NCBI RefSeq assembly: GCF_031769215.1
Contig: NW_026781921.1
Location: 1,426,001 to 1,490,000 of the forward strand
DNA length: 64,000 nucleotides
Reading direction: 5' to 3'
From: Ylistrum balloti
Taxonomy: Eukaryota
Part shown: positions 2,620 through 38,509 of the stretch, one piece after another
Layout: each line of letters opens with the position of its first letter
Position numbering within the stretch: the stretch's first letter is position 1
Notes under the pieces: generated by a model
The model's database searches: none
What the model saw: only the letters and a program-made list of their open reading frames with translations
What the model was told of the DNA's origin: nothing
Program-made: the position numbers and the translations under genes

Positions 2620-3610
2620 TAGAATACACTTTGTCCTTCATTAATGTCATGTAACACTTTTGTCCTTCATTTAATGTCATCCTACACTTTGTCCTCCATT
2701 GATGTCATGTTACACATTGTCTTCAATTAATGTCATATAACATTTTGTCTATATTAATGTCATGATGCACTTTGTCCTTCTTTTATGTCATATCACACTT
2801 TGCTCTCCATTAATGTCTGTCATAGTACACTTGTCCTCCTTTAAAGTAACATTACACTTAGTCCTCCTTTAATGTCACATTACACTTAGTCCTCCATTAA
2901 TGTTATATTAACACTAAGTCATCCATTAATGTCACATTACACTTAGTCATCCATTAATGTCACATTACACTAAGTCATCCATTAATGTCACATTACACTT
3001 AGTCATCCATTAATGTCACATTACACTTAGTCCTCCATTAATGTTATATTAACACTAAGTCATCCATTAATGTCATAGTACACTTAGTCATCCATTAATG
3101 TCACATTACACTTAGCCATCCATTAGTCACATTACACTTAGTTATCCATTAAAGTCACATTACACTTAGTCCTCCATTAATGTTATATTAACACTAAGTC
3201 ATCCATTAATGTCACATTACACTTAGTCATCCATTAATGTCACATTACACTGTCATCCATTAATGTCACATTACACTTAGTCATTCATTAATGTCACATT
3301 ACACTTAGTCATCCATTAATGTCATATTACTCTCAGTCATCCATTAATGTCACATTACACTTAAGTCATCCATTAATGTCACATTACACTTAGTCATCCA
3401 TTAATGTCACATTACACTTAATTAATGTCACATTACACTATGTCCTATGTTTAATGTCGTCTTACACTGTGTCCTCCTTTAATATCATGTTACACGTTCT
3501 TTAATTGCATGTTAGACATTGTTCTTCTTTAATGTCATGTTACACATTGTTCTTCTTTAATGTCATGTTATACATTAATGTTTAATATCATGTTACACAT
3601 TATTCTTCTT
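2620..3610. repeat. Minisatellite, 28-bp unit (taatgtcacattacacttagtcatccat); homogeneous core ~2860-3440 with degenerate flanks
   Basis: ccattaatgt at 2951, 2979, ... Confidence 0.95.
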
Positions 3611-3982
3611 TATAGTCAATGCTTGAAGACAAGTTCTACAAGACTACTATAGATTAAGCATATGATAAGTTTGTTTTAAGTACACAAGGGGACAAAAATA
3701 ACAAAAGTACCTGTCCCTTTCTTATAACTGCCTATATTATAAAAGAGCAAAGTAAGATATAAAATCTGATTTGACATGGCACATCATTACTGATCAGAAA
3801 ACTGCCCCAACACTTCAGAAAAGCCACTGGTAATGTACAGCCTCTCCTTGAATAAAAAGGGCATTCAAAAGCTTAAAAAAGTTTTTTTAAAAATTACTTT
3901 TGGTTTCTAAAACAAACTTATATATAATTGATGAACCATGTAAAAATATCAACATAAAACACTTTGTGGGCAATGAAACAAG

Positions 3983-3988
3983 TTTATT
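3983..3988 (-). terminator. Candidate polyadenylation signal (AATAAA) for the short-end isoform
   Basis: Sense context tgtgtataAATAAActtgtttcattgcccaCA followed by the GU/U-rich gtgttttatgttgatattttt. Other AATAAA sites lie at 6283-6288 and 5240-5245. Confidence 0.35.
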
Positions 3989-4121
3989 TATACACACATT
4001 TAATTTGCACATGAAGTTATGTACATGATGAGAGCATGCAGACTGAATAGCACCAATAAATTAGTGAGTTCTACCCTGGAGTGAAATATACAACAAACAT
4101 ATACCCTGTGAGGCACTAATG

Positions 4122-4733
4122 CCACCCTTTCTGGGGCCTGGCACAATGCTACACCCTTCTGGGGCCTGTCACAATACTACAACCTTCTGGGGCCTGGCAC
4201 ACTGCTACACCCTTCTGGGGCCTAGCACAATACTCCACCCTTCTGGGGCCTGGCACAACACCTATGCCTTTCTGGGGCATAGCAGAATACTCCACCTTTC
4301 TGGGGCCTGGCACAATACTCGACCTTTCTGGGGCCTGGCACAATACCCCACCTTTCGGGGACCTGACCTGACATTATGCTCCACTTTTCTGGGGCCTGGC
4401 ACAATACTACACCCTTCTGGGGCCTGGCACAATACTACACCCTTCTGGGGCCTGGCACAAGACTACACCCTTCTGGGGCCTGGCACAATACTCCACCTTT
4501 CTGGGGCCTGACACAATACTACACCTTTCTGGGGCCTGACACAATACTACACCCTTCTGGGGCCTGGCACAATACTCCACCTTTCTGGGGCCTAGCACAA
4601 TACTCCATCTTTCTGGGGCCTAGCACAATACTCCACCCTTCTGGGTCTCGCACAATGCTACACCTCTCTGAGGCCTCTTACAATTCTCCACCCTTCTGGG
4701 GCTTAAACCAATGCAAAACCCTTCTGGGGCCTC
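4122..4733. repeat. GC-rich minisatellite, 28-bp unit (cacccttctggggcctggcacaatacta), ~22 copies
   Basis: ggggcctggc at 4391, 4419, ... Confidence 0.96.
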
Positions 4734-6745
4734 CAGTCCTCACATAAATACGAACTACATGACCGTGTGCAATGACTTCAAATGTATGCTGTATAAAGTG
4801 ATGGATTGTGCTGGGATTCCACCAATCAATTCTAGGTTTACATGTGAACTAGTACAACTAATCAGATCATGGCTCTGACATGGGTTCATAGATTCCACAT
4901 ATCACGTGCTGGTTTTATGAGTGCCAGCAGATTTCAACCAATCACACAGATGATATAAGGGCTTTCTCCTATGAGTAAAACTTTAATCATCATGGAAGCT
5001 GAATTGTAAAAATCATTTTCAATTCAGAAAGTTTTAAAATGAAAAGAAATATTAAAATACCACACTTAATGTTGATTCATTAAAATATTGTTAGTTTAGT
5101 TTCTATTCTGATATAAATACTTTCACAAACATGTTAAGTCCTCGTTAAACATTAGCTTGATAAAACAAATTTGGCAGTTCTTGTCTACATATATAGGAGA
5201 TATTTAGTCATTATCACTTTTGTTTGTTATATTTAGAAATTTATTTGCATATTTTTGGTTGCAATACATCTATGAGTATTTTCACTATTCATTGAGGTAA
5301 ACTTCTTGTGTATGTGTATGATTTTCAAAAAGCTTATTGAATTCATTTTAAAATGCAACTTGATCATGGTTTTATCCAATTAATATTATATAATATGGCA
5401 GTGATGAATAGTGCAACACTATACACAGTAATAAATTAACTTAGCAATTCTTTCACGACAGCAGGAAATTATTCACAATGTACAACAAACATATCATTTC
5501 AAACCATTAAAATTGTTTGTCAATACTCTCATACATTTCAAATCTCACTCACTGGAAGCTATGATTAAGTCATTCCTTTCAAAGAAAAAAAAAATAATAA
5601 ACAGCTAAGAAGTTGTTTTGGCTAGATTTTTCAAAAACATCACAAATTTTCGACGACTTAGATACTCACAAGTAAACGATAAATAAAACAATTTCTCTAA
5701 AGAAATCAATGAAAAATGCCTTTCAAAAGCAAATTTGACCCAGCCTGAAAATTGGTGAACATCACAGCACACAGCATTTGTAAGTAGGAGATAAGACAGA
5801 CGTGGGACAATCCCAGCATGATTTGCATCCGAGAATGATTGCCCAGGCAACCATAGCGACTAGTCATATTTATAGTTACAGTAGCATGCAGATATTATCT
5901 CATTATTGCTTGGCTACAACTTCACCAAAATCGAACACCACAAAGATGGCCTTTGTAACAAACTTTGCTGAACACTACTTGAACTTCACAGTTAACAGTT
6001 ACAATTTAGTTGGTTTACAGCATCGACACACACATCTACATGGTTAACATTCCATCTCTTTTTGCCTCGCCACTACACACTCTAATAATCAACATGGCTG
6101 CCAGCTAATGCAATTACTCATAGCCACAAAATGCATCACCTGTTTGCATGTACATCCCTTCAATACAAGTAAATACCGGTCATATATATTGCACATGTTT
6201 TATAACATCACCCTACTCACACCTCTCACACTTCTGAGGTTTCACACATCTGTGGGTTGTTAGCATGGACTGACCGGTAATCTTTATTAAAACTGCAGAC
6301 CTGGACCAGCACTATCGAGACCAGGAATTATAGTCCTGACCTCAGCTATACCTTGCACACCCTTACAAGTCTTCATTACTTACAGGCAGTCTTTACTTTC
6401 CCTGATGTTGAACTTCTGACTATTGCTCATTACTGAGAGCAAATTCAGGTAAAGAACACAACCAATCTTTCTGTTACATGCTGTTGCGTGTTCTCTTATA
6501 ACACAATGCTCGCAATAAATTATTGCATTCAGGGAGCGAGTACATTTTCAGTTGAAGCACGCATCCAGCTTACCATCAACATGAATCATAACCGCAGGTT
6601 CTGTATGGTTACAGTTAGTGCATTGAGTCAACTGTGACTGTCAGACCAGCACTGCTTCATTAACCGTGGACAAGGAATTATGCACGGTAGGTCTGGTAAC
6701 GGTAAGGGATTGACTTGGTCAGAAAAACTCTTGTCACAGTAGGAT

Positions 6746-6946
6746 TCATCTGCTGAGGCTGTGAGAGCGCTCCCGGTCGCCATCGTTAGTTGTCTCTTCT
6801 TCCGCTTTAACTTGATATTTGGCAAAGACACGATGCATCATGGCCTGCTTGAGGGTTAGTCGTTCAGCTGGGTCATACTCAAGCATCTGATTGATGAGAT
6901 CAAACAAGTCGCGATGATCAGGGTTTTCTGGGTCTCTAAGATACCG
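6746..6946 (-). CDS. CLK2: Alternative terminal exon S (canonical end): RYLRDPENPDHRDLFDLINQMLEYDPAERLTLKQAMMHRVF...DRERSHSLSR*, 66 aa
   Basis: Acceptor tttgttctttgcag|CGG, phase 0. Encodes subdomain XI (MLEYDP..R.T). The RERSHSLSR terminus resembles my recollection of the Drosophila Doa C-terminus. Confidence 0.93.
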   Translation of the reverse strand, partial: RYLRDPENPDHRDLFDLINQMLEYDPAERLTLKQAMMHRVFAKYQVKAEEETTNDGDRERSHSLSR

Positions 6947-7540
6947 CTGCAAAGAACAAAGGCCTCACATTAGTTATCCATGTAGGAAAATGAACAAAAC
7001 AAAGATATTACAGTAAACTGGAAAAAATCAAAACTTCTTTCTAACCAGGGATTATTGATATAGAATAAATTGGTATATCCTATTCTTAGTGTTTTCCTTA
7101 AACAGGTCCTAAACAAATACAACTAGAATCAATATGTGTATCATCATACTGTATAACATGAAATAATCAGAAGTATTTTTACTTCTTTATTTTGTGAGTT
7201 TTTTTTCTTTTAGGATACAATATTTCCAATGACATATTTTTTTATCTTGAATCTTTTTTTTTTCTTTTCCATTTTAAAAGTATGTATGCAGCCTATAAAA
7301 ATGAATGTTTCTACACAACAATCATTGCATGTTATACAGTTTTAATTACACTTAATAAATTCTACCTGAAATAAAACCAGTGTAAAGTTATTGTGACAGA
7401 TCAGGTTAGTATGGCTAAATATGGTTGTTCTATAATACAATCACTGTAAAGCAACATTCTTTTTTTATGTGCAATTTATTTTCCTGAACTTCGTGATGGA
7501 AACAAATGCGTAAAATTTCATTTTAAATGAAGATAGACAT

Positions 7541-7796
7541 AACAAGGGCTGTCTAAGACACAGATTAAGATCCCCGAAAGGGACAAAATTTAAGTATAAA
7601 AAATAACAAAGGGCTATAACTCCTAAATTTGCAAACATGAGAGATGGTTCTTGTGCACTGCACTTGTTGTTGAGATCTATCTACTTCTGAAGTTTTATGT
7701 TGATACCACTTATAATTTTTGTTATGCTCCGGACAAAATTATGACTGACAGATGGACAAAGTAACAACTACATGCTCTCCCTACAGGGGGCATAAT
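7541..7796. mobile_element. Non-autonomous bivalve dispersed element (Helentron/HINE or CvA-like)
   Basis: Starts acaagggctgtc...atccccg. Ends with gac-type microsatellite (gacagatggac), then catgctctccc...gggggcataat short hairpin. Confidence 0.5.
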
Positions 7797-8089
7797 GACA
7801 GATAATAACATAGCTTTACTTCATAAAAGATAATCACAACAGTGAAAATCGCTGAAGTTCATAACTGTGAATGTTGGTTTACAATAAGCATGTTGTTTTG
7901 TACCTGTTTGTGTGATGTAATACATTCTATACTGAAAGCATTCTTTGTTCTCTAAACAACGAAATATTCCACCATATCAATTCGTTGTGTTCTCATTTTA
8001 AAAAACAGCCTTGCTTCTGTACTTACCATATCATTTACATCCACGAATCATTAAAGATAATTATAGGTAACAGTTAGCATCAATCAACA

Positions 8090-8395
8090 GATGTCTAGTC
8101 AAGACACCACCTACAGGTGTATTGTGGTGTACCATAGTCAGGTTAATACAAATCTTGGTTTTATTAACTATAAGTTACGATCAGTATCATTCAACAGAAC
8201 GCTAGTCAAGACACCACTTACAGGTGAATTGTGGTGTACCATAATCAGGTTGATACAAACCTTGGGTTTTGAGTAACAACAAGTTCCAATCAGTATCATT
8301 TAACAGAACTCTGATCAAGACACCACCTCCAGGTTGATGCAAACCTTGGGTTTTGAGTAACACTAAATAACAATCAGCATCATTCAATAGAACTC
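8090..8395. repeat. Degenerate ~108-bp tandem repeat, ~3 copies
   Basis: tcaagacacc at 8099, 8206, 8315. Confidence 0.85.
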
Positions 8396-9499
8396 ATGCC
8401 TACAGAGACATATGTCGTAATTTTTCATTAATGTGTACCAGTATTAACCATTTTTGTGCGACTAACAAATCCAGTGCTCCCGTTATCTCTACGTACTTCA
8501 CACATTTCTCATGTCATTCTAAAGTAAAAGCTACTTCATACAAATTCCTTATACATGCAAAAACCTAGTATTTGGTACTTCCAATAATTTTCCAATCATC
8601 ACTATTAGATTTTCCCTGTTCATATTCAAGATGTATTATTTCCCTGGTGGGATACAAATATGATATCAGACTTGACCATCTCAAGAGCAAGATGAGGTAA
8701 ATTCAATCCAAGAGCAAATACTCTCAAAGATTTCCAAAAATCATACAAAGAAACTCATTCAAAATCAGTCACACCAGACACTTTTTTAAGATTTATTTTT
8801 TTAAAAGAACATCTCATCAGGAATCAATATGAATCCAATTATTTCAAATGAAAATAGTTTTCTCTTCAGTTATAAAATCGATATAATCACATAAAGGTTT
8901 CAGGTATAAATCTACACTAAAGAAAGCTGTTCAGCATTTATCACCAGATTCAAGACTCATCCGCCATTTGTGACAGTTATATCTTTAATTTGATAAACTT
9001 CAATAACACTGGATATCTTGCATAAAGTTGTGAATCCTTTATTTCGATGACACGTTGGAGTTATTGATAGATTAGTAGGTAAGTATACATGTATGTATTT
9101 AATACAATCTTTCTAATTATAGATCTGTTTTCTAACATACCAACAAGTCACTGACAACCAAGTCCATGCCATTCAAAACCTTCTGACAACACACAACACT
9201 TCAAGTCATTCGCAAAAGATCAAGCCATTTTAGACAACCAAAACCGACCATACCTGACAGGATGGTGACACATGCATTAAACACCAACTTAATATGCCTA
9301 TGGCAACGAAAACCTTCCTTTTGCAATGCCATGCTGTACTGCTTCATTAACAGTTTTGCTTCTCTCCACAGTTGACATTCGTCTACCTATCTAAATATTT
9401 TCCCTTAGTTCTTCTGTCTACATATATTTCACTGTCACCTTTCCTTGTACCTATGATTTACCGTCCATGTTAACAATGCTAGAGTCATGCTTAGTTTTA

Positions 9500-9700
9500 C
9501 CCACCTCAGTTCCCTTACACATCATACCCTTCCAAAATAAGTAACATCATTACGATTCACTTATAACACAATGATTTACCTATGACAGTAACACCTCAGT
9601 TCCCTTACATATCATACCCCTCCAAAGTAAGTAGCATCATTATGATTCGCTTATAAAACAATGACTTACTCATGAAAGTAACACCTCTGCTCCCTTGCCA
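9500..9700. repeat. ~90-bp tandem duplication, ~2.3 copies
   Basis: cacctcagttccctta repeated at ~90-bp spacing. Confidence 0.8.
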
Positions 9701-10008
9701 CATTCTTTTCCTATGCAACTATTATCTTTTCCATTCCTTTACAACACAATGTTTGACTTGTGCAGGTAATATCTTCTCCATTCATTACCAAACCATGCTT
9801 TACCTAAGTAATATTTCTGTTCATTACCACAACATGCTTTACTTAAGCAAGTAATATTTTCTCTGTTCTCTTACCACATCATGCTACATCTATGAAAAAA
9901 ACTTCTGTTTTTTTACCACACCATGCTCTATTTGATGAGGACATCTGTAATCATGCTCACTCCATAGCCAAGTAGAGTAAAATATCCACCTTCTATGATT
10001 GGTCACTG

Positions 10009-12555
10009 TCATACAGTCTCTATCCCACTAGATGGATTAGATTGCGGTCCTCCATCCGGTGCTTGTGTTGTGTAGACCGGATCACGTTCAACAGTGTTAT
10101 CACAACCAGAAGGCAAAATGACCGACACACAATTGTCAGCATCGTCTATAACCAAATGCTCGCCACCAGAATTAGTCCTTTGAATATTCTGAATGGAGTT
10201 GGAATCTGCTACTGAGGGAGAGCCAAGGTCAGACATCACAGGACTGTTTGGAGTTTTACCTGTGAATATATTGCTAACAGCGATACCAGAAGGCAGAGGA
10301 GAAGCATGAACCCGAGACGGCTCATGCAGCACCAGTTCGCCTTCCACAACACTGGGATCGGGATCTGGGTCAAGGCCCACTTCAGATAAAAAACACTGCT
10401 CTGATGTGGGTGCCTGTTTTTTACTCCGTTTCCTGTGTGCACGCTTAGCAGTTTTCTTCTGTGTTTTATTCTGAGCTTCCTCAACCTTGACCTGAGTGTC
10501 ACTGTCCAAGGGTGTGTCTGAGAGAACAGCTGTGTAGGCCACAATGGGAGGTTTCTGTATTGGGGATGGTTCAAGAACCATGGTTTGAGTTGGCAAAGTC
10601 ACCATATTCCTTGTATCAGTGGGATCATACACCAATGCTGCTGGCTGCTCTAGCACTACAGTAACAGTATCGGGTGTTGGATCAGTCACAGCAATCACTG
10701 GAGTAGGATTGGCCACTGCGATGACAGGCGGGGGAACTGTCACCGTCATCACAGGCCCTGCAGGATTCATCTCTACAATGGTCTTGGCGGTGTCTCTGAC
10801 TGCCTCCTGCTCACAGTCAGCACCTTGGGATAAAAAACCTTGCTGTGAATCTGTCTGGCTGGTATCTTGCTGTTCTACATCTCCTCCCACTTCTGTGTTA
10901 CATACAGTGCTTGTCTCGCCTTCTGTTTCATTGTTGCTGAGATTAGTTTCAAACGAAAAAGCATTAGCTCCTGATGAGGCAGTGTCAGGGGCCTCTGCAG
11001 AGGATGGAACCTCAATAATGGGGCTAATCGGCTGGTGCTGTGACATATTTAAGAAGACACTTGGGGTAAAAGTCTGGCTTAGCAACAGCTTGAGTGGATC
11101 TTCCTCAGGCTTCTTCTCCTTTTCTTTAGGAACTTTCTCTGGTTCTGACCAGGATCTTTCCGTCACTTCCACTTTGAGATCTTGTATTGGCCCTTTGACT
11201 GGTTCTTCTGGTTTCTGCTGGTGATTAAGCTCGGATTTTGACCTATCTACAGAGACAGGCTTAGCCAGTGCAAGCTTGAGCAGTTGATATGCTGACAGTG
11301 GTTTCTCTTCTCTTTTTGGGACGGGTTCCACTTCCAGTTCTTCCTCATGTCCAGACACATGCCCAGACTTTCTACGATCACCTCCTCCACGCTCTCTTCG
11401 CCGACGTTGGAGACGTTCAGCAACTGTTTCTTCAGGGTCGAATCCAGGTGACTCACCTCTCTCAGAGATGGAAGTTTTTCGACTAGTTGACTCATCAAAA
11501 CTGTCAAAGCTTGCAGGCTTTTCTATTTTGTGTGTACTAGATTCATCCTTATGTGAACTACTGTCTTCAGACCCAAACATCTGTCTCCAGGTTCGGATAG
11601 CTGATCCCTTGTCCATTCGTGATGGAGACACAACTTTGACCTGTAATCTGTCAGGTGACAGTTGCTGTTGTTCCGGAACCCTCTCTACAACCTCCTCTGC
11701 TGGCTGTTCTTCCTCCATGTTCTCCTCCATTCTTTGTCGCCATGATTTCCTTCGAGTAAAGGCATCGTAAGTCTTTGGTTCCTCAGCAGCTGGTGAAGCC
11801 TCTTTTTCTTTTTTAGGTAATGTCAATTCAAGATGCTCTGGTTCAGCAACCTCTAGCTCTTTCTTCTGTCTCCATGCTTTAATGCTGAGCACCTCTGGCT
11901 CCGCGGCCTTGGTATCCACCACCGTTGTAGTCTGCTCTGTTGGTGGATTAGAGGCATAGTCATCCTTGGGTTTCTCTGTTTCACTGGCCATTTCCATCTC
12001 AAGTTTGAGACGCCATGACCTTGGCTTGTTAGGATCCTTAGGAGGAGACATTTTTGCTTGTGCTTCTGCAGCCTTTCTTTTCCTTTCTTTGTATGTTACA
12101 TAGCCACTTGTTTTCTCTGGTAGTACCTTGTTTGGCGTTTTCTGTTTCTTTGGAACCACCTCTGGAACTTTCTCCTCTACTTTCATTGGAATATTTTGTG
12201 CCACCTCTTGACTAGAACTCAGCTCTGTATGGTTCTGTTCAACATGGCTCACCTCACCAGAATCTTCCCTAGATTTGGCAGCTGATCTTGACCGGCGTTC
12301 TGAGGATTCCCTTTGTGATCCATTGGTTGGGACAGTCAGTTCTGCCATCTTTCCTTCTTCTAATGAAGCTGATTTTTTCCTCTCGGCTGGGTTGTCTAGA
12401 GGAAGACGTTCTGCATAAAATTTCCGACATGGACCAAAGAACGGATGGTTCATTGCCTCTCGTAAAGTAATGCGTTCCTCTGGTATGTACTCGAGCATCA
12501 TCTCAGTCAACTCAATCAGTTGCCGATGTTCTGGCCCCTTGTCTCGAATGTAATG
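10009..12555 (-). CDS. CLK2: Alternative terminal exon L: HYIRDKGPEHRQLIELTEMMLEYIPEERITLREAMNHPFF followed by an ~800-aa E/K/P/S/T-rich disordered tail (848 aa total, ends GIETV*)
   Basis: Acceptor ttgttgtttttcag|CAT at 12556-12558, phase 0. The stop-free 2547-nt frame is GC-richer than its surroundings. Its first ~40 aa align with kinase subdomain XI. Confidence 0.85.
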   Translation of the reverse strand, partial: HYIRDKGPEHRQLIELTEMMLEYIPEERITLREAMNHPFFGPCRKFYAERLPLDNPAERKKSASLEEGKMAELTVPTNGSQRESSERRSRSAAKSREDSGEVSHVEQNHTELSSSQEVAQNIPMKVEEKVPEVVPKKQKTPNKVLPEKTSGYVTYKERKRKAAEAQAKMSPPKDPNKPRSWRLKLEMEMASETEKPKDDYASNPPTEQTTTVVDTKAAEPEVLSIKAWRQKKELEVAEPEHLELTLPKKEKEASPAAEEPKTYDAFTRRKSWRQRMEENMEEEQPAEEVVERVPEQQQLSPDRLQVKVVSPSRMDKGSAIRTWRQMFGSEDSSSHKDESSTHKIEKPASFDSFDESTSRKTSISERGESPGFDPEETVAERLQRRRRERGGGDRRKSGHVSGHEEELEVEPVPKREEKPLSAYQLLKLALAKPVSVDRSKSELNHQQKPEEPVKGPIQDLKVEVTERSWSEPEKVPKEKEKKPEEDPLKLLLSQTFTPSVFLNMSQHQPISPIIEVPSSAEAPDTASSGANAFSFETNLSNNETEGETSTVCNTEVGGDVEQQDTSQTDSQQGFLSQGADCEQEAVRDTAKTIVEMNPAGPVMTVTVPPPVIAVANPTPVIAVTDPTPDTVTVVLEQPAALVYDPTDTRNMVTLPTQTMVLEPSPIQKPPIVAYTAVLSDTPLDSDTQVKVEEAQNKTQKKTAKRAHRKRSKKQAPTSEQCFLSEVGLDPDPDPSVVEGELVLHEPSRVHASPLPSGIAVSNIFTGKTPNSPVMSDLGSPSVADSNSIQNIQRTNSGGEHLVIDDADNCVSVILPSGCDNTVERDPVYTTQAPDGGPQSNPSSGIETV

Positions 12556-12793
12556 CTGAAAAACAACAATACAATACACAATATACGACTGGAAGTAAAC
12601 GCTGGAATTTTTTTTTATATATAAAATTTTGAAGAATTTACATAAACCATTTTCATATTTCTCACAAGTATTTTGAAATATCTTTAACAATTGTGATAAT
12701 TTTCATATAAACAATAAACTTTCATTAACAATCACATAATATATTGTTGAAATTTATTTGAACTTATTTAAAACTCTTCATCATAGCAACTAT

Positions 12794-17536: not shown

Positions 17537-17627
17537 CTCCAAGGGCTTGCAGCTTTCTCTCACGTACCGCCCTGATGAACTTTTCGAATCCCAGTCTAAC
17601 CGCCCCTTGTAGAAATACTTGGACTTC
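17537..17627 (-). CDS. CLK2: Mutually exclusive exon B: (K)[30 protein letters not shown], 91 nt
   Basis: ttacccctcttaag|G ... GAG|gtaagg. Phase 2 in, phase 0 out. Confidence 0.9.
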
Positions 17628-18526: not shown

Positions 18527-18614
18527 ATACAGCGGCCGACAGTTTTCTCTCACATAACGCCCTGCGGACGACGTATGGTCCCACTCTAGGCGGCCGTGCC
18601 AGAAATTATTTGTT
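18527..18614 (-). CDS. CLK2: Mutually exclusive exon A: (K)TNNFWHGRLEWDHTSSAGRYVRENCRPLY, 88 nt (absent from the ORF track in this frame)
   Basis: Pyrimidine tract ctctctctcctccctatcaaag|A and donor TAT|gtaagt. Phase 2 in, phase 0 out. Clear paralog of exon B. Confidence 0.88.
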
Positions 18615-20556: not shown

Positions 20557-20636
20557 TTTGTCTTTTTCACCATTCGGTAGGGCAGTGATCCCAGAATCCG
20601 CTCCATCATTGCTAGATGCTCTTTGTTATCATGAGT
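20557..20636 (-). CDS. CLK2: CLK exon [26 protein letters not shown](K), LAMMER signature, 80 nt
   Basis: ctgcag|ACT ... AA|gtaagt; [11 protein letters not shown]. Confidence 0.98.
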
Positions 20637-20845
20637 CTGCAGCATATAAATTTAAGTCTTTAACATCTCAACTAACATAATTATCTCCCTTTACTTGTTT
20701 GCTACAACGCATGTGGAATATCTGCACTAGTATGAAAGTTTACCTCAGAGAGTCAATTTTTTAATCCATTTGTAAGTTTGTATATTAACCATGAAATAAT
20801 TTTGAAATATTTTGTAAGGCTTATCTGTTCGTAAAACATAATTAC

Positions 20846-26215: not shown

Positions 26216-29200
26216 CATGAAAATATCTCATACATAATTGATTGATGACAGACTGCGATACATCAGCTTGATTTTTTTCTCATCGTCCCGCAAACTGTGG
26301 ATGGAACCCATCAATATCTCAGTGTTGATACATACTGATCAACATCTTCCAGGAACTTTATCTTATCCATTTGGGACGAAACAGAGATAGATGTGCAGTA
26401 AGATGTTTTTGAGTGTGTTGAAGAATACCATCCCCAGCAGCAGCATGTATTCACATGTTTGTATTTAACAGTTTGCAGTTTTTCTTCCTTTTTCACAAAT
26501 TTCCTTGATATAAATTTTCCTATCTTATCTATTCTATCTTAATCTTGTATCATATTAATTTGAAATATCTCCGAAATCTACATTAGTAAATTGACAATAC
26601 AGCTAAATCAGCAACATTTATCTTAATCAAGCTGATTTTATCTGGTTTAACTGCAGAAGCAATAACCGATCAATCTATATTGATGTCAAGAAAATGTTCC
26701 TACATTTGGATGCTAACTGACACAATAACATTGTCTTGACATGAGCTGAATTATCCCTACAGTTCCAAGATAGCAGGGCTGTGATGGGTATAGAATCCCC
26801 AGTATTTTACTACCCAACCTGTATCTGTGTTACACACTTTACAGCACCCTTACATGAAACTAGTGTCTACATAAGGGTGCAGTAAAGTTCTGTGATGCCC
26901 AGCTGATGTATTCCTCAATGAATAAAAAAGTCTGGCTGTAAAATATCGTTATCAGCAAGATAAGATGACTATGAGAATGTCTGGCAGGGTTGACTGGCTT
27001 TAATAAAGGATGTTGATTCGGTGTTGAAACTAGTCAACGTCCTTGATTAAAGTCGTCCTTGATTAAAGTCGATCAAAACTGTCAGACGTCGTCATGGCCA
27101 TCTTTATCTATTGATACTTTTGTTGAGTTGGGCTTAAAACTGAAGAGATGGGTGAACTAGACTTCCTTGACATCACTGTAAACACTTGGATCACAAGTCA
27201 GAAGTTTTATTATGTCTGATGAGCTTACCAACATGTACACACATTAACTCACACAACAGCAATTAATCTCATTTGGCCTACCTCTTGTGTTCTTACCCAT
27301 ACAACATCAGTAATCTTTTAAGAACACAAATCTGACATAAAGGATATTCTCATGATGAAATACAGATGTGGTAAAACAAACGATGCCTGTGAACATTTCA
27401 AAAAAAGATCAAGTAGTATCCTTTGTGAATGAGATCAGTAAATAAGCGAGATATTGTATCAATTTAATCAGTTTTAAGAAATGTTTCCCATTATGATGGT
27501 ATCCATGTACAGCGGACCTTCAATAATCCTGACACTTTTGTTCCCGGCCAAAAAGTGTCCGTACAAGAAATTTTCCCGACTGTGGAGTTTAGTCAACCGG
27601 CCAATATAACTAGAGCTATCTTCCTTTATTACCAGACGATAAAATTGTCAATATGATGCTGTTGGTTGTTTTCAGACTGCAAATACAGGTATTTATATAC
27701 GTCTTTCATTGTCAAAGTAACTTTCATTTTCTATAATAAATGTACATGAATTAAATTTAGGAAATGAAAGTTGTTCTTACTCATTGAAGTCCAATACTGC
27801 GGATGATTTATTTAATGTCTGCTCAATATCAAGTGATATTTTACTAAAAAAATTGATAACTTCTGATTTCTTCATATGATATGCACTACAAACAGTGTAT
27901 TTTTGTTTGTTTTTAGCACAATTCGGATGCTAATTCTGCAATGACTAAGACAATGAGTTGTCATCTGGAACTATTCTACATTTATAATTAAGTGATTTTG
28001 TTGAATTGACTGCATAATGATCACTATAACTACAGATTTGAAAACAATAAAATAGCGTTGTTTAAAAACTGAAGATATTTATTTTTCTCAATTCACTTTT
28101 ATATGTATTGACTGATTTTTCTCTCAATTCAACTTTTACTGACTGATAACTTGGAAATCCATGCCATGTTTTTCTACCTTAATTATGTGTAAGTATTGAG
28201 GGACAAGGGCCAATATTTTATTTATTTGTATTTCTATGGTCTATAACCAATGTTTATTACATCTTTTTCTTTATTTTATCTCATGAACAATATACCATCA
28301 TTACTATCAATGTTTAAAACTATAATGAAATGCAGAACAATGTGTTTTCTTTATACAGAACTTGCTATATATGAATATATTGGATAATTTAGGATTAACT
28401 GCCACACAGAAAACAAGACCAGACTTTGATATTTTCTTTACAATTAATTCACTTTGTCCTATATAGAAGTACTGCTAAATAACATTGGTAAATGTTTCCG
28501 GTGTTCATCTTTCTGGGGTTGCTTTGACTACAGTGTTTGGTAGTATGCTGTACACCTCTGGTAAAGGTGACGGAAAAAAACAGATTTTCCGAAAAAGTAT
28601 TTCCAGACTGGTAAGTAAAATGAACCCCATGGAAATCTGTTCCCCAACATTTCTGTCCTTATAGCCAGATTTCCAGACTATCGGCATTCAGATTATCGCA
28701 ATTCCATTGTACTTGTGAACAACTCTGTTTACTTCTCCAACCGGACTCTTGTCCAAGGGGACACTTGAATACACAATCCAGCCCTACTTAACAATGAATA
28801 CTTTAATGTGTTACATTGTACAAGGTAAAACTAAGGCTAAAATTTCCTTATTGTACAGTAAAAACCGTTTAAATGTTAGTCTCCTATTATATACTGTGTA
28901 GTTGTTTATTTTTGCAGGGCTGGTATTCACTATGGTTTTGTTTTGGCTCGTTCAAGATATTACATTTCCTGCATGTCTATATACTGATATGCAAGTATGA
29001 AGGCATGTAATACATCATTTGTGAGATATAAGTACACCGTAAATATGTTTGCCAATCTTTAATTTCATGCTATCCTTAATCGCTTTGAATGTCGTAAAAT
29101 ATTTGCATCCCGGGAGTGTATTCTCTATTTGGCTTCACCGACAAAATTGATGTTAACACTTTGGTAAACATCAAGTCTGACAACTTTTTCTGCCAAAATG

Positions 29201-29314
29201 GTATTAGCTATTCCATCAGGTGTCAGGCTGTTCCATCAGTTTATGTAACATCCAATGAATAATAAATTTTTTTTTAAGTAGCATGAACAATATCACTTTG
29301 TGTCTTACATTTCC

Positions 29315-29735
29315 CGAGGGACACACTGCCTTGATAACGCTGAAGCCATATCCTAAGTATTAAGTTCGCATGATTAGCTGTGTAGAAGATATGGCCCAGA
29401 CACACTTATTCTTTTACATAGGCTGAAGGATAAAAAAGGTCATAGAACAATGTACGGTCACCAAGATGACTCCATATTCCCAAGTAATAAGCTCCTATTA
29501 TAACAAGTGTAGAAGTGGGTCAAATTTTGATATAGGTCAAGGTCAAAATGTAGATCAGTGACCTACTTTTTTGACAGGCAACATATCATCCCATCAAGGT
29601 GAACCAATATCTTTGGTATTAAGTTCCCATGATTAGTTATGTAAAAGATAGGGACTGGACAAGATAGCCAAAGGACTGAAAGAGAGATGAAATGCAATAC
29701 TATAGTCCCCTCTGATTCTTAGTGGAGGACTGGTA
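29315..29735. mobile_element. Degraded non-autonomous dispersed element(s)
   Basis: ggtcaaggtca motifs and the terminal tatagtcccctctg...gaggac hairpin. Confidence 0.35.
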
Positions 29736-30724
29736 GCAAACAAATATCTGTCAAAACACAAATATATGAAACAGCTTTTCTTTCTTGTTGTTTACTGGTG
29801 TGTATTTTTAAAGATATCTAAATATCACAGTAAAATATGTCATTTAAAAAATCTTAAAAATGAAGTTTTCACACGAGTTACAGAAAGAAAGGAAAACATA
29901 TTTTAATTACCAACTGTGCAGTACATAATTATGCACATGTTTTTTTTTCTAAAGTTTCCTTCAGTACATATCTGATCATTAGTTTGACAGCTTACTTCCA
30001 ATATCCTACAATCTGATAAAATGTATGTTTTTAGCAATTTACTGTTTAATAAATATGTTTAAGGCAACCATGTACACATATTTGATACCATGTTAAATAA
30101 CACTGTACATGGCCATTTAATATATCCTATATCTATATATATAGAATTCATCACATTTTCACTATATATATATATATATACACGTATATACCATTAATGG
30201 CAGAGCTACTACACAGTGGAATCTAACTTGTACATAAAGAGAGCCTTCAACCTACAACCAAATCCAATATTCTGCATGCACCAGGCATAGTTATAAGAAA
30301 ATAAAGAATGAAACATATGTGATAATTATATTCTCTTAGCAAAGAACCAGAAAAAAAAGCCTGGTTTCTATAGGCAGACTGAAGTTGGTTGCCACTTTTG
30401 CTCAATGCCATGCATTCGTTTTCCCGCGATACCCATTTCAAGAGAACTGAGGTGTTTATAGAGCAGGAGTGAAACATTGATACAGACAAAGCCCTAGAGA
30501 CAAAGCTGCAGCGTTGATGAGAAAACAGTAGAGGTGTTGATACAGACACAAGCGAGGTGATGATGACGACAAGCAAAGACGTTGATGTTTGAGTTTCAAG
30601 AAAACAAAGAAAGATAAGATGTTTAGAATGATGAAGAGATAGAATATTCTTTTAAAACTATACACATCAATATTAAGTATTATCTGATAACATAAGAAAC
30701 TTCAAGAATAGATGATTCCCTCTA

Positions 30725-32320
30725 CATCAGATTTTTTCCATGTAAAATTCCCTCCTCTAGTAAGGGTCTGAAACATCAGATTTTTTCCCTGTTTAATTCC
30801 CACCTCTAGTAAGGGTCAGAAACATCAGATTTTTTCCGTGTTAAATTCCCCCCTCTAGCAAGGGTCTGTTTAATTCCCCCCTCTAGTAAGGGTCTGAAAC
30901 ATCAGATGTTTTCCCTGTTTAATTCCCCCCTCTTGTAAGGGTCTGAAACATCAGATGTTTTCCCTGTTTAATTCCCCCCTCTAGTAAGGGTCTGAAACAT
31001 CAGATGTTTTCCCTGTTTAATTCCCCCCTCTAGTAAGGGTCTGAAACATCAGATGTTTTCCCTGTTTAATTCCCCCCTCTAGTAAGGGTCTGAAACATCA
31101 GATGTTTTCCCTGTTTAATTCCCCCCTCTAGTAAGGGTCTGAAACATCAGATGTTTTCCCTGTTTAATTCCCCCCTCTAGTAAGGGTCTGAAACATCAGA
31201 TTTTTTCCCTGTTAAATTCCCCCCTCTAGTAAGGGTCTGAAACATCAGATTTTTTCCATGTTAAATTCCCTCCTCTAGTAAGAGTCAGAAACATCAGATT
31301 TTTTCCCTGTTTAATTCCCCCCTCTAGTAAGTGTCTGAAACATCAGATTTTTTCCCTGTTTAATTCCCACCTCTAGTAAGGGTCAGAAACATCAGATTTT
31401 TTCCGTGTTAAATTCCCCCCTCTAGTAAGGGTCTGTTTAATTCCCCCCTCTAGTAAGGGTCTGAAATATCAGATGTTTTCCCTGTTTAATTCCCCCCTCT
31501 AGTAAGGGTCTGAAACATCAGATGTTTTCCCTGTTTAATTCCCCCCTCTAGTAAGGGTCTGAAACATCAGATTTTTTCCCTGTTTAATTCCCCCCTCTAG
31601 TAAGGGTCTGAAACATCAGATTTTTTCCATGTTAAATTCCCCCCTCTAGTAAGGGTCTGAAACATCAGATTTTTTCCGTGTTTAATTCCCACCTCTAGTA
31701 AGGGTCAGAAACATCAGATTTTTTCCGTGTTTAATTCCCCCCTCTAGTAAGGGTCAGAAACATCAGATTTTTTCCGTGTTAAATTCCCCCCTCTAGTAAG
31801 GGTCTGAAACATCAGATTTTTTCCGTGTTAAATTCCCCCCTCTAGTAAGGGTCTGAAACATCAGAATTTTTCCGTGTTAAATTCCCCCCTCTAGTAAGGG
31901 TCTGAAACATCAGATTTTTTCCGTGTTAAATTCCCCCCTCTAGTAAGGGTCTGAAACATCAGATTTTTTCAATGTTAGATTCCCCCCTCTAGTAAGGGTC
32001 TGAAACATCAGATTTTTTCAATGTTAGATTCCCCCCTCTAGTAAGGGTCTGAAACATCAGATGTTTTCCGTGTTAAATTCCCCCCTCTAGTAAGGGTCTG
32101 AAACATCAGAATTTTTCCGTGTTAAATTCCCCCCTCTAGTAAGGGTCTGAAACATCAGATTTTTTCCGTGTTAAATTCCCACCTCTAGTAAGGGTCTGAA
32201 AGCATCAGATTTTTGCCCTGTTAAATTCCCCCCTCTAGTAAGGGTCTGAAAGCATTAGATGTTTCCTATGTTAAATCCGACCTCTGGTAAGCATCAGATT
32301 TTTTCCATGTTAAATTCACC
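30725..32320. repeat. Minisatellite, 49-bp unit (agtaagggtctgaaacatcagatgttttccctgtttaattcccccctct), ~33 copies
   Basis: agtaaggg at 31081, 31130, ... Confidence 0.97.
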
Positions 32321-33704
32321 CTCCTGCTACTTTGGGGGCTGACAGCACCAGATCTTTTTCTGTTTTCATGTACCTTTGTACAAATCTCTTGGATGATATA
32401 TAATTCTTAGCCTACCTTCTAACCACACAACTGTTGGAGAGCTATTTTAGTAATCACAGATGGTAGAGAGATGAACTTATTCCTGGCTATCTCATTCCCA
32501 TTCCAAACCTACCAAAACACATCCACAGGACTTACACTTCATCTCCAGTACGATAATCTAACTTCATTATCTTTTTATTAATGTCTTTCAGTTTAATGAC
32601 CTGGAAAATCTCAGAAACATCATGATTTGCGTGGTTTCTTTCTAAAATGAAAATTATGAAAAATCTTTAAACAATATTTTTTTTCTTCTACTGACCTTAG
32701 TAAAGATAAAAGTATTCACATTTGGTGTTGATTTTTAATTAACTTTTGGTGATAAACCAATTACAGAACAAACAGAGCCTACAGTGAAGGTGTCTGTCTA
32801 TAAAGGACAACAGCATCTGTGTAAATGTCACTGTATATATGAATAACTAATGATCTACTACTCAAAATAGTCAGGCACAGTTGGAGCAAGTCAATGTTTT
32901 CAAACAGAAAAATATATTATGACGAATGTTTTCCAAATCAACATCAAGCAATTAACACATACAACACTACATATGGCCTGAAATCAGCATTTGTTAATAT
33001 ATGGAAGATCCTTCTAAACAGTAACAATTCTACACTCTCCATTTCCTTTCATAACTAACAGGAATTGTTTTAAGTGTTTTTTTCCTTTAAGAAACTTGTC
33101 AGATTATGTATAGTTTTGTTTGGAAGAGGAACCACTTGGTTTCTATACCAGACTGAAGTGTTTTGATATGTCAGTGGGTCTACATCTACTGGTGGTTTAC
33201 ATAGTCCCACAACCTATATATAAACACTATCAGGTCAGGTAATGGCTACAGTAAAGGTTAGGCTCCTTTTTATAAATCTAGATGTTGCCCTGGTGTACAT
33301 CTGCATTTGACTGCAATACACTAGGACCATCATTACATCTGATACATCAAGAATGCTAATTACAGAGGGCTGGCAACATCAAAGTCCAGACCATTAACAA
33401 AGCAATTCTGGGCAATAATTAATTCAAGTTTAATTCTTTTGCTCTCATATGTTTCAATATCAGATACTCTGAGAAAACAAAATGCTTTACATCCAAAAGA
33501 ATTTAATAGTTTACTTTTGCCAAATGATTTAAAATTTAAAATTAAATTACAGCCAAACTTTTATATTAATATTTTTCTCGTTATTTGTCAAAAGTTTCAA
33601 GTTCTTAGAAGTAATTCACACCAACAAAAAAATATCCTGAATCCTCCACCAGCCGTACACATATTCAGTTACAAATGATAAAATCATTCCTTGTAGAGTA
33701 TATA

Positions 33705-35520: not shown

Positions 35521-36189
35521 AACTTTAATAGATCTGAAAACATTTCTCTCATCAAAAACAAAAATAAACATCGTGTTCCATGTTCTTAAAAATGCATTTG
35601 TAATACATTTCAAAACATCCATAATATGTTTTTTCTTCCAGGCCAGTTATCAACTATTAAAGCTGAATGTTATAACAGCATAAATAGCCTTGATGTACAA
35701 ACCCAACTGTTACCATACAAAAAAGTGAATTTAGGTATGTTATCTTCAAGTCGATAAGATTGAGGAGAAATTCTGAGGAATTCCTCCTCCCTCCCTCCAT
35801 CTCTCTCTCCCCCTACAACATGTGGCTATACAGACACAGCTAGACTCTGCAGTAAATCCAGGTACAGCATACACTCCTCATCATTAACATCTAGTACAGC
35901 ATCATGTGTTCACCATATACCTGGTACAGTGATACACAAAAACATCTGCCGTTTATACAAAGCTGACCTCCTACATTTTCTAATGACTACCTCCATCTAA
36001 ACAAACCCAGCACACAATTAGGTCCATCATAGAACAGAACCATTTGGGAGATTTAGAAATATTTGTTTATACATTTCATATGAAGAATTTCATCATATCT
36101 ACTGTGATCTGTAAACTCAACCATTAAGGTGCATCACTTCAATTCTTATCACAAAACTTCTCTTCCTAATGTTTTAATCCTGTCATCAG

Positions 36190-36665
36190 GAGAAGGGACT
36201 GGTGGAAAAGAAGGTGAAGAAAAAGGCAGGGTATGGGGAAGAGGAAGGGGTGGGGAGGATGGTAGTGGAAGGAAAAGGGAGGGGCTGGAGAAGAAGGAAG
36301 GGGATGGGAAAGAAAATGAGTGGAAAAGGCAGGGGATGGGAAAGGGATGGGGTGGAAAAGGCAGGGGAGGGGAAAGGGATAGGGTGGAAAAGGCAGGGGA
36401 GGGGAAAGAGGAAGGGGTGGAGAAAAAGGCAGGGTATGGGGAAGAGGAAAGGGTGGGGAAGATGGTAGTGGAAGGAAATGGTATAGGTTGGAGAAGGCAG
36501 TGGATGGGAAAGGGATGGGGTGGAAATGGCAGTGGAGGAAATGGAGAAGAAAGCTGGGGACAGGGAAGGAGAGGGAAGTGCATGGGTGGGAGAAGGCAGG
36601 GGGCAGGGGACAGGGAAAGGCAAGGTCTTGAAGAGAAGGCAGGGGACAGGGAAGGAGAGGGGGTA
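36190..36665. repeat. Polypurine (G/A) low-complexity tract with internal duplications
   Basis: Almost purely G/A on +. The block gaaaaaggcagggtatggggaagagga...gatggtagtggaagga occurs twice. Confidence 0.93.
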
Positions 36666-38509
36666 GTCTCTCACAAAAAATTTTCAAAAACATATTGTAG
36701 TCATACAAGATACAGTTGTAATCACTTCTCCAGCCATTTGATTAGCTGGTAACTTGTGATTGTTTTCTGTGTACTGATAAAGCAAGTCCCTGCGATCCCA
36801 GAAGTGTGTATATCCCTTAACACCTCAATGGGATTGCACTCATTTTGTGTGTCATTCCTCCCGTATTTTCCAAGCTGCACTTACAATTATGATAACAATC
36901 TTGTAAACCATTTAAGACCTAATTTTTTGTCTACGTCAACATGAACACTAGTTTTCATACTCTGGTCAAAAACACTATTCTGAGAATATAGATGCATGAT
37001 ATAATGACTGGCTCCATCAACTGTCTGCAACATCAGTCTATGATGAACATCTTATGATGGATGCTGACGTCAAGTGGGGCTGCCATATGAATTTGTGACC
37101 TGAAGCCAGCAGAATAATAAGAAAAATAACACCGAAACAAATCTAAAAATAGCCAATTCTTTCTTAATGGTACACAGGCTACAAACTGTACTGAAAAAGT
37201 ATTTATTTGTACGCAATACTTAAGAATCCATATTCAAACTCTTTTCAGTAATTTTTGGTACTGTATTGAAACCTGCTGATTATGACATTCAATTTTCCAG
37301 ATGAAAATATTACAATAACTGACATTTGATAATAACCAAGCAAGCTGATAGATCAAAAGAAGTGAGACTACCACAATAGTCAAACCTATTGCTAAAGAAA
37401 ATGGAGATGATTAGACAAAGTAATATTAAAGGACAATTTTATGTTGTAACAATTAAAATCAACATAAAGTATTACTAATATCAATGTGATTGATTTAAAT
37501 GTTGTAAGCATGCAGTCATATTAGATGCAAAATAATTTCTTTCATTTTTATTTACGTTTCTAAAAACGGAACTGAACTGAAGGCAAGATAGATGTAATAA
37601 CACGAAGGTTTACATATAATATTAATCATTATCATGATTTCGTCACTGTTGGAAATACAAAAAAAACACCATGTAACCTGGCTCATGTAATCGTCAATGC
37701 AATTTTGTCACACAAAAAGCTACAACGATCATGTGATAGTCACATGTCCCATAAGTTGTTCTATCTAGACATATTTGATTTAATCTTTTAACAAATTAAT
37801 CTTTATGTGTATTGATATGAATGGAAATATCATACATTGTGAATAAATGTGTATATCAGTGTTTACACATAGCAATTTTTTTTTCTTGTTCTAATTGTTT
37901 GGGCATAATTTGGAGTCGTTATGTAATCGTAACTGACTCTGAGGTAGGGGTGGATCTTACCTGTAACATGTGGGAAAGGCTACCTCAGGGAACATAAGGT
38001 GATAATTAGTGAATTATTAAGAGTCACAAGCAACAGCCCAGGCGTCAAATACAGACACTTGCTCGGGGTTTTTAACTTACTAAAATCAATTCTGAACTGA
38101 AAAAATATTCATATTAACCAATATTTCACATTGGTCTGTATCACAACACACACACATTGGTCTGTATCACAACAAACATATTCTTTTATTTAATTCCTAT
38201 AGGAAATATTCAGTGCAAGGAAAAAACATGATAGCCAATATTTCATGTTTTTCTGTATCATAATCAAGCTTTTATCATCACACTAGGGTATATTATGATA
38301 TCTGATATCACTATAAGTGGGTTCTGCAGGACCTTATCGTATTCCAAATTGTCAAAACATTAAAAATGTTCTACATTTATCTGTCATTAACTCATTACTG
38401 CTATAATCAAAACCTACAGTACAACATTAATATGTCTTTTAGTCTCTAACTGGTAATAAAACCAAGAACTGTATTCATGTCAATAACCTCCATTCTGAAT
38501 GTCAAAACT

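Follow-up and report, generated by a model that had tools for sequence, protein, structure and literature searches.

A CLK2/Doa-type kinase gene of the scallop Ylistrum balloti with a giant stop-bearing internal exon and two duplicated C-lobe segments

The 3' end of a kinase gene in the scallop Ylistrum balloti raises the question of how one gene can supply two endings for the same catalytic domain, one short and one continuing into a tail of about 800 residues. We analysed a 64,000-nucleotide (nt) stretch of this genome (contig NW_026781921.1, positions 1,426,001 to 1,490,000), hereafter the window, in which positions are counted from the first letter. The window contains one minus-strand gene, running from ~58000 down to ~5000. 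A preliminary description made from the letters alone had proposed two alternative terminal exons, here called L (10009-12555) and S (6746-6946), each opening at a phase-0 acceptor with a paralogous copy of kinase subdomain XI. The coordinates, acceptors and paralogy were borne out (42-56% identity), as were the coding lengths of 66 amino acids (aa) for S and 848 aa for L, the latter with a tail of 808 residues past the kinase domain where ~800 had been stated. The choice between paralogous versions of subdomain XI within one CLK gene also stood, but the terminal position of L did not, since L is internal and is joined in RNA from 9990 to 6946.

A protein search with the long open reading frame (ORF) returned the RefSeq model P0001 ('uncharacterized protein LOC132564128', Ylistrum balloti, 1208 aa) at 100% identity, on which the domain PF00069 is present. 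The kinase part matched human CLK2 structures (E value 3e-173 over 341 residues), was 66-70% identical to CLK2 in alignment, and had CLK2/Doa proteins as its top shorter database matches. The 11-residue CLK/LAMMER signature of subdomain X is present in P0001 and is encoded at 20645-20557 on the minus strand. The best matches, the signature and the structure match together identify the single CLK2/Doa-type LAMMER kinase gene, the scallop orthologue of CLK2/Doa. To map its exons, P0001 and the Argopecten GenBank model P0004 were placed back on the window by tblastn. Each upstream kinase exon was found as a single copy, and each of the last two coding segments was found in two copies, in the order Xa-Xb-L-S.

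Four public sequencing runs (X1, X2, X3 and X6), available as assembled contigs, were placed on positions 6700-12690 of the window. Runs X1 and X6 covered this stretch evenly, as DNA does; runs X2 and X3, which come from one sample carrying the organism label of the window, covered only 9990-12555 and the positions up to 6946, as RNA does. A single 6039-nt contig of run X3 contained ~1.67 kb of sequence upstream of L, then ran from 12555 to 9990, and then continued from 6946 for ~1.8 kb. It left out the 3043 nt between 9990 and 6946, whose ends are GT..AG on the minus strand, and RNA depth in runs X2 and X3 was zero in 9700-9899. The join from 9990 to 6946 makes L an internal exon, 2566 nt long, rather than a terminal one, and S the shared last exon; the mRNA that contains L also contains S, as 3' untranslated region (3'UTR). 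In the RNA of runs X2 and X3, L had no 3' end of its own and joined the S 3'UTR instead. At position 12555, the overhang in both runs, when reverse-complemented, encoded YVRENCRPLY, the end of Xa, and the upstream partner of L is therefore Xa (18527->12555) and not Xb. The preliminary description had expected the junctions 17537->12555 and 18527->6946. These gave way to 18527->12555 in RNA, and annotated scallop proteins likewise have Xa before L and Xb before S.

The locus was also present in four DNA runs with a different organism label (X6-X9), with scattered single-base differences only, which suggests that either a very closely related organism or the same species under another name stands behind the label.

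The exon structure around the end of L, all on the minus strand, is compact. The long-isoform stop codon TGA (10009-10011) lies 19 nt from the donor; these last 19 nt of L (9990-10008) are followed by the donor GT at 9989-9988 and by the L-S intron of 3043 nt (6947-9989), which showed little or no RNA depth and even depth in the DNA runs. An alternative last exon would be expected to have a cleavage site of its own; L was spliced from 9990 to 6946, with no depth beyond 9990. L does have the architecture of a poison exon, in that it is internal and has an in-frame stop (10009-10011) between its acceptor (12555) and its donor (after 9990). It lacks the other hallmark, a non-productive stop more than ~50-55 nt before the last junction, since the distance is 19 nt and the ORF is under purifying selection.

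The reading that we hold with considerable confidence is that this one CLK gene yields either a canonical or a tailed kinase by skipping or including the giant stop-bearing internal exon L, with Xa and Xb exclusive of each other and S as the common last exon. Inclusion of L would give Xa->L->S and the long kinase (1208 aa in the RefSeq model; 1314-1350 aa for the form with the arginine/serine-rich (RS) N-terminus in other scallops), with S as 3'UTR. Skipping of L would give Xb->S and a canonical short kinase of ~530 aa, in which S is coding. The balance between the tailed and canonical kinases would thus be set by inclusion or skipping of L and not by switching of polyadenylation sites. L and S would need no rule of mutual exclusion, because the stop in L leaves S untranslated. 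For its 3'UTR and poly(A) site, L would rely on S, reached through a conserved, rather weak donor. The long mRNA may also escape nonsense-mediated decay, because 19 nt is well inside the 50-55-nt distance that spares mammalian mRNAs.

The second duplicated segment lies upstream of L on the same strand. Exon Xa (18527-18614, 88 nt) encodes the end of the MAPK-like insert (TNNFWHGRLEWD...RPLY), and exon Xb (17537-17627, 91 nt) is a copy of canonical type that ends in KPLE. Both were placed by tblastn; Xa is the copy joined to L in RNA, and Xb is the copy joined to S in the Mizuhopecten protein P0129. The two exons are ~0.9 kb apart and their peptides are 59-62% identical. Because the use of both (88 + 91 nt) or of neither (0 nt) breaks the reading frame, Xa and Xb are predicted to be mutually exclusive exons. 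The Xa->L junction in RNA leaves Xb out, and every protein model carries one X copy, as seen in contigs and models rather than in read counts. The ratio of nonsynonymous to synonymous substitution rates (dN/dS) was 0-0.10 for Xa among scallops and 0-0.12 for Xb, with zero amino-acid change in Xb among three genera at a synonymous rate (dS) of 0.2-0.56.

The L and S exons form the other pair. The stop-free stretch of L is the longest in the window (897 codons, 10012-12702, minus strand; the runner-up has 214 codons) and coincides with a peak in G+C (0.477 versus ~0.34), and the S ORF lies at 6746-6952 on the same strand. Both acceptors, at 12555 and 6946, are AG in phase 0. Over their first ~40 residues, L and S were matched by tblastn with E values of 9e-8 to 3e-11; both kept the subdomain-XI arginine and both aligned to human CLK2. 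The start of L (12436-12555) encodes the 40 aa of L-type subdomain XI (HYIRDKGPEH...HPFF) and had a dN/dS of 0-0.04. It is followed by the coding region of the tail (10012-12435), which is predicted to be disordered, contains islands of motifs and matches P0001 at 100%. The coding part of S (6749-6946), supported by its ORF, RNA depth and dN/dS, encodes S-type subdomain XI and the canonical protostome CLK C-terminus, whose last residues are RERSHSLSR. In the S ending, 25 residues follow the kinase domain, and the exon closes with the short-isoform stop codon (6746-6748). Two tandem exon duplications, independent of each other, gave rise to Xa/Xb and L/S.

The long form was annotated in Ylistrum, Pecten and Mizuhopecten (RefSeq) and in Argopecten (GenBank). 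The long forms of the other scallops were 71-76% identical to that of Ylistrum and were named 'STE20-like' in Pecten maximus, 'Nek5-like' in Mizuhopecten yessoensis and 'uncharacterized' in Argopecten irradians. The L donor, AAG/GTGGAT (GTTGAT in Mizuhopecten), was found 19-21 nt past the stop in all four scallops. The preliminary description had considered that RNA might not splice into 12555, that the region might belong to an independent gene or transcript, and that the tail might show a dN/dS near 1 with frameshifts in relatives. None of these was borne out: RNA contigs show splicing into 12555, the tail does not form a gene of its own, and its dN/dS was 0.10-0.20 over ~2.4 kb among four genera, with no frameshift in the L tail of Argopecten, Pecten or Mizuhopecten. 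The low dN/dS values and the intact frames show purifying selection on Xa, Xb, L, S and the tail, and both endings are therefore likely to be functional.

Is the short form made at all? Several points weigh against the proposed choice between two endings. The RNA evidence comes from a single sample in the form of assembled contigs, from which minor forms are lost. Neither an Xb->S nor an Xa->S junction was seen in the Ylistrum RNA contigs, for which the mapped stretch was 6700-12690 and so lay outside Xa and Xb. The X3 contig runs unbroken through Xa-L-S, so that the short form can be no more than a minor product in that run, and the long form seems to predominate in the material sampled. All RefSeq isoforms are long (three in Pecten, X1-X3; two in Mizuhopecten, X1 and X2; one in Ylistrum). 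In addition, the 50-55-nt rule for decay has been established in mammals and not in molluscs. These observations could mean that scallops make the long form only, with Xb and the S frame as relics and S merely a 3'UTR, as might be read from the exclusively L-type RefSeq isoforms of three scallop genera, the unbroken contig and the lack of an observed Xb->S junction in Ylistrum. We consider this unlikely. Exon S had a dN/dS of 0.03-0.14 at dS up to ~1.0 across four scallop genera, and the unchanged amino acids of Xb are likewise not expected of untranslated sequence. A Mizuhopecten protein (OWF49171.1, here P0129, 534 aa) consists of the RS region, the kinase, Xb and S; it sits in a 90% identity protein cluster represented by the long form. 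In run X2 the contigs are interrupted at the acceptor of S, with the S contig roughly twice as deep as the L contig, a weak indication of the short form. From these data we infer that the short form is also made in Ylistrum.

Less probable still is the model of the preliminary description, in which L and S are alternative terminal exons with their own 3' ends, chosen by last-exon switching through Xb->L and Xa->S. It would account for the fact that both exons have phase-0 acceptors and stops, all four combinations of X copy and ending are in frame, and Xb+L and Xa+S are annotated in other molluscs. It conflicts with the RNA contig in which a canonical intron is spliced out between 9990 and 6946, with the zero RNA depth just downstream of 9990, with the Xa rather than Xb sequence in the overhang at 12555, and with the conservation in all four scallops of a donor past the stop of L. 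Least credible of all is an independent gene or annotation fusion whose kinase-like start is a captured fragment: the tail has no domain and no relatives outside a narrow group, and the automatic names differ among species, but the ORF starts exactly at the acceptor and not at a methionine, its subdomain XI has the very low dN/dS given above, the RNA contigs extend ~1.67 kb upstream of 12555 through Xa, and the join between kinase and tail is modelled in four species.

Under the favoured arrangement of included or skipped L, the next question is what the 808-residue tail adds to the kinase. No significant Pfam match to the tail was found. An exhaustive phmmer search (2 clusters) recovered relatives of the tail only in scallops and in P0005, a protein encoded on a metagenome contig of animal origin, and a profile search with the tail alignment A1 returned nothing beyond that result. 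Comparison of the scallop tail profile with the tails of Pinctada and Mytilus gave no match, and a search of the ESM Atlas with the tail gave noise only (scores <=0.60). The AlphaFold model of the tail had a mean predicted local distance difference test (pLDDT) score of 41 and a predicted template modelling (pTM) score of 0.22, with isolated helices, too low for a fold search. With a net charge of -31 the tail is acidic, and E, S and P are abundant in it.

The islands that are conserved between the scallop tail and P0005 coincide with predicted helices. They include four [KR]-x-W-R helices, RKRKA, ERLxRRRRERGxxxRRKSG, KPLSAYQLLK and DPLKLLLSQ, and further HQPISPI, RKRxKK, CFLxE and ASPxPxGIA. 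In the models, this is the signature of a predicted disordered region that would act via short linear motifs. The preliminary description had suggested that L may retarget the kinase to a scaffold, cytoplasmic or tissue-specific compartment. The tail may serve in docking, localisation, autoregulation or in-cis phosphorylation; localisation is suggested because the basic clusters resemble nuclear localisation signals, and in-cis phosphorylation because R-x-x-S sites occur in the tail. Docking, localisation or autoregulation would work through the four [KR]-x-W-R helices, three basic clusters, PLSAYQLLK, DPLKLLLSQ and HQPISPI.

CLKs set splice-site choice by phosphorylating serine/arginine-rich (SR) proteins and are described as an N-terminal RS region followed by a C-terminal kinase domain. 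A protein end shortly after the kinase domain is a usual, non-defining property of CLKs, which the S ending has and the L ending lacks. The scallop gene shares with vertebrate CLK1-4 the family, the LAMMER motif, the N-terminal RS-rich region and, in the S form, a short C-terminus; it differs in its L form, as human CLK crystal constructs and full-length chains end within ~15 residues past HPFF. We know of no vertebrate CLK with a C-terminal extension or with duplicated subdomain X/XI exons. A known case of regulated splicing in the family, the skipping of CLK1 exon 4, yields a truncated inactive protein. In the CMGC kinases JNK (MAPK8-10), mutually exclusive duplicated C-lobe exons combine with a short or long C-terminus to give 2 x 2 isoforms, and the C-terminal difference of ~40 residues arises from alternative splice-site use. 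JNK is the nearest analogue, in logic and not by descent, in that exclusive C-lobe exons are combined with a separate 3' splicing choice. The scallop gene differs in using an 848-codon stop-bearing cassette, and the events are not homologous. The poison cassette exons of splicing regulators are similar in being internal exons that add an in-frame stop before the normal last exon; theirs are short, non-productive and decay-triggering, whereas scallop L is a conserved 848-aa ORF with its stop 19 nt from the junction.

For Drosophila Doa, the fly LAMMER/CLK counterpart, at least six isoforms of up to 227 kDa are given, with long non-catalytic regions on one kinase (bioRxiv 10.1101/2022.10.14.512079, citing Kpebe and Rabinow 2008); the same source places the variable parts at the N-terminus, attributes them to alternative promoters and treats the catalytic domain as common to all isoforms. 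As far as that account goes, the scallop gene resembles Doa in producing isoforms of very different size from one locus, and differs in that its variable part is C-terminal, is added by exon inclusion and comes with a swap of the last two catalytic segments. A conserved tail of 808 residues was not seen in vertebrate or insect CLKs.

The preliminary description had known of no account of such an extension. Our literature searches turned up nothing published on a C-terminal extension of a CLK or on these exons. The long-isoform sequences are already public as automatic models from four species of scallop, with names that mislead or say little. The scallop proteins called 'STE20-like', 'Nek5-like' or 'uncharacterized' are CLK2/Doa orthologues, which matters for annotation. 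The long-tailed CLK is conserved, mechanistically neat and lineage-specific. The form most readily shown by the RNA contigs and RefSeq models carries the conserved 808-aa C-terminal tail, and the tail together with two versions of the last catalytic segments amounts to a natural experiment on the part that non-catalytic regions and C-lobe surfaces play in directing a CLK. In addition, the gene illustrates cleanly how a giant cassette exon with its own stop can be productive, turning what was ancestrally the last coding exon into 3'UTR.

How old is this arrangement? The exon order Xa, Xb, L, S was also found in Pinctada imbricata, Mactra antiquata and Octopus vulgaris. L-type exons, with the signature HY[LI][RK]DKG, were seen in bivalves and cephalopods, and S-type exons, ending in (R)ERSHSLSR, also in insects, a tick and nemerteans. 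From this distribution, S is the ancestral ending and L a mollusc-specific duplicate older than the bivalve-cephalopod split. Xa+L is annotated in scallops, Mactra and Octopus (isoform X5); Xb+L in Ruditapes (X1), Mytilus, Pinctada and Octopus (X4); Xa+S in Ruditapes (X4); and Xb+S in Mizuhopecten, Magallana, Potamilus and Elysia. Since all four combinations are annotated across species, the scallop pairing of Xa with L and Xb with S is not obligatory in the phylum.

The length of the L tail varies: Mactra has a short one, with 63 aa following HQFF, and so does Octopus, with 69 aa following HPFF. The metagenome contig that encodes P0005 has an Xb-like exon followed by a 953-codon L exon that starts with HYLKDKQPEH and has a GT 2 nt after the stop; P0005 showed an identity of 31% overall and of 42% in the best stretch. 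As judged from these sequences, long L tails are confined to scallops and the P0005 lineage, plus probably Pinctada. In the Pinctada imbricata locus (L005, 26966-33097), the L ORF ends after 317 aa and a 421-codon ORF follows in another frame (28042-29304), weakly similar to the scallop tail (E value 1.7e-5), with a WR-type motif between the two; a second gene model (28129-33097) ends at the S stop. This locus looks like one long L exon that is broken by frameshifts, real or due to assembly errors, and spliced to S. In Mactra (L006, 52021-52064), the short L-type exon has a plausible donor, AAG/GTGATT, 40 nt past the stop, and inspection of the Octopus sequence revealed no comparable obvious donor after the stop of its L-type exon.

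Tentatively, and with belief a little short of evenly balanced, we suggest that a molluscan 2 x 2 module (Xa/Xb x L/S) predates the bivalve-cephalopod split and exchanges the two final segments on the C-lobe surface of CLK. The L arm may, in scallops and related animals, have grown into a motif-rich disordered tail of 800-900 aa that marks the predominant isoform and adds a second, C-terminal targeting or autoregulatory region beside the N-terminal RS domain.

The remaining exons and neighbouring elements complete the layout of the gene, again on the minus strand. The RS-rich N-terminal exon (57981-57712) matches the N-terminus of P0004, and an alternative RS-less first coding exon (MRVD..., 49647-49480) is the start of the RefSeq model P0001; RS-less starts of the MRVD type also occur in proteins of Ruditapes, Mytilus, Mactra, Magallana and Pinctada. 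The last constant kinase exon (20557-20645), which contains the LAMMER motif region, was placed by tblastn of P0001 and ends in KKT plus 2 nt of a codon, the phase being taken from P0001 and the flanking sequence. In the Argopecten irradians locus (L002), the LAMMER-motif exon before Xa occurs twice (73209-73298 and 74154-74243), each copy 96.7% identical to the Ylistrum peptide, and the Argopecten model P0004 has an odd junction just upstream of the doubled exon. The exon was either duplicated recently or doubled by an artefact of assembly or annotation.

Downstream of S, the shared 3'UTR extends at least over 5144-6745, one RNA contig reaching ~5144 and another ~4619. A 28-bp minisatellite of 21.6 copies (4123-4732) lies at or within the far end of this 3'UTR, and one RNA contig ends inside it. 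The L-S intron contains a high-copy repeat at ~7500-7800, where the summed contig depth was 3389-5744 in two DNA runs compared with ~10-17 around it; many contig joints and loose ends fall there, and small RNA contigs also touch the repeat. In a long intron further upstream, a purine-rich low-complexity block (36108-36749) has open frames on both strands and a reversed GC skew of +0.27.

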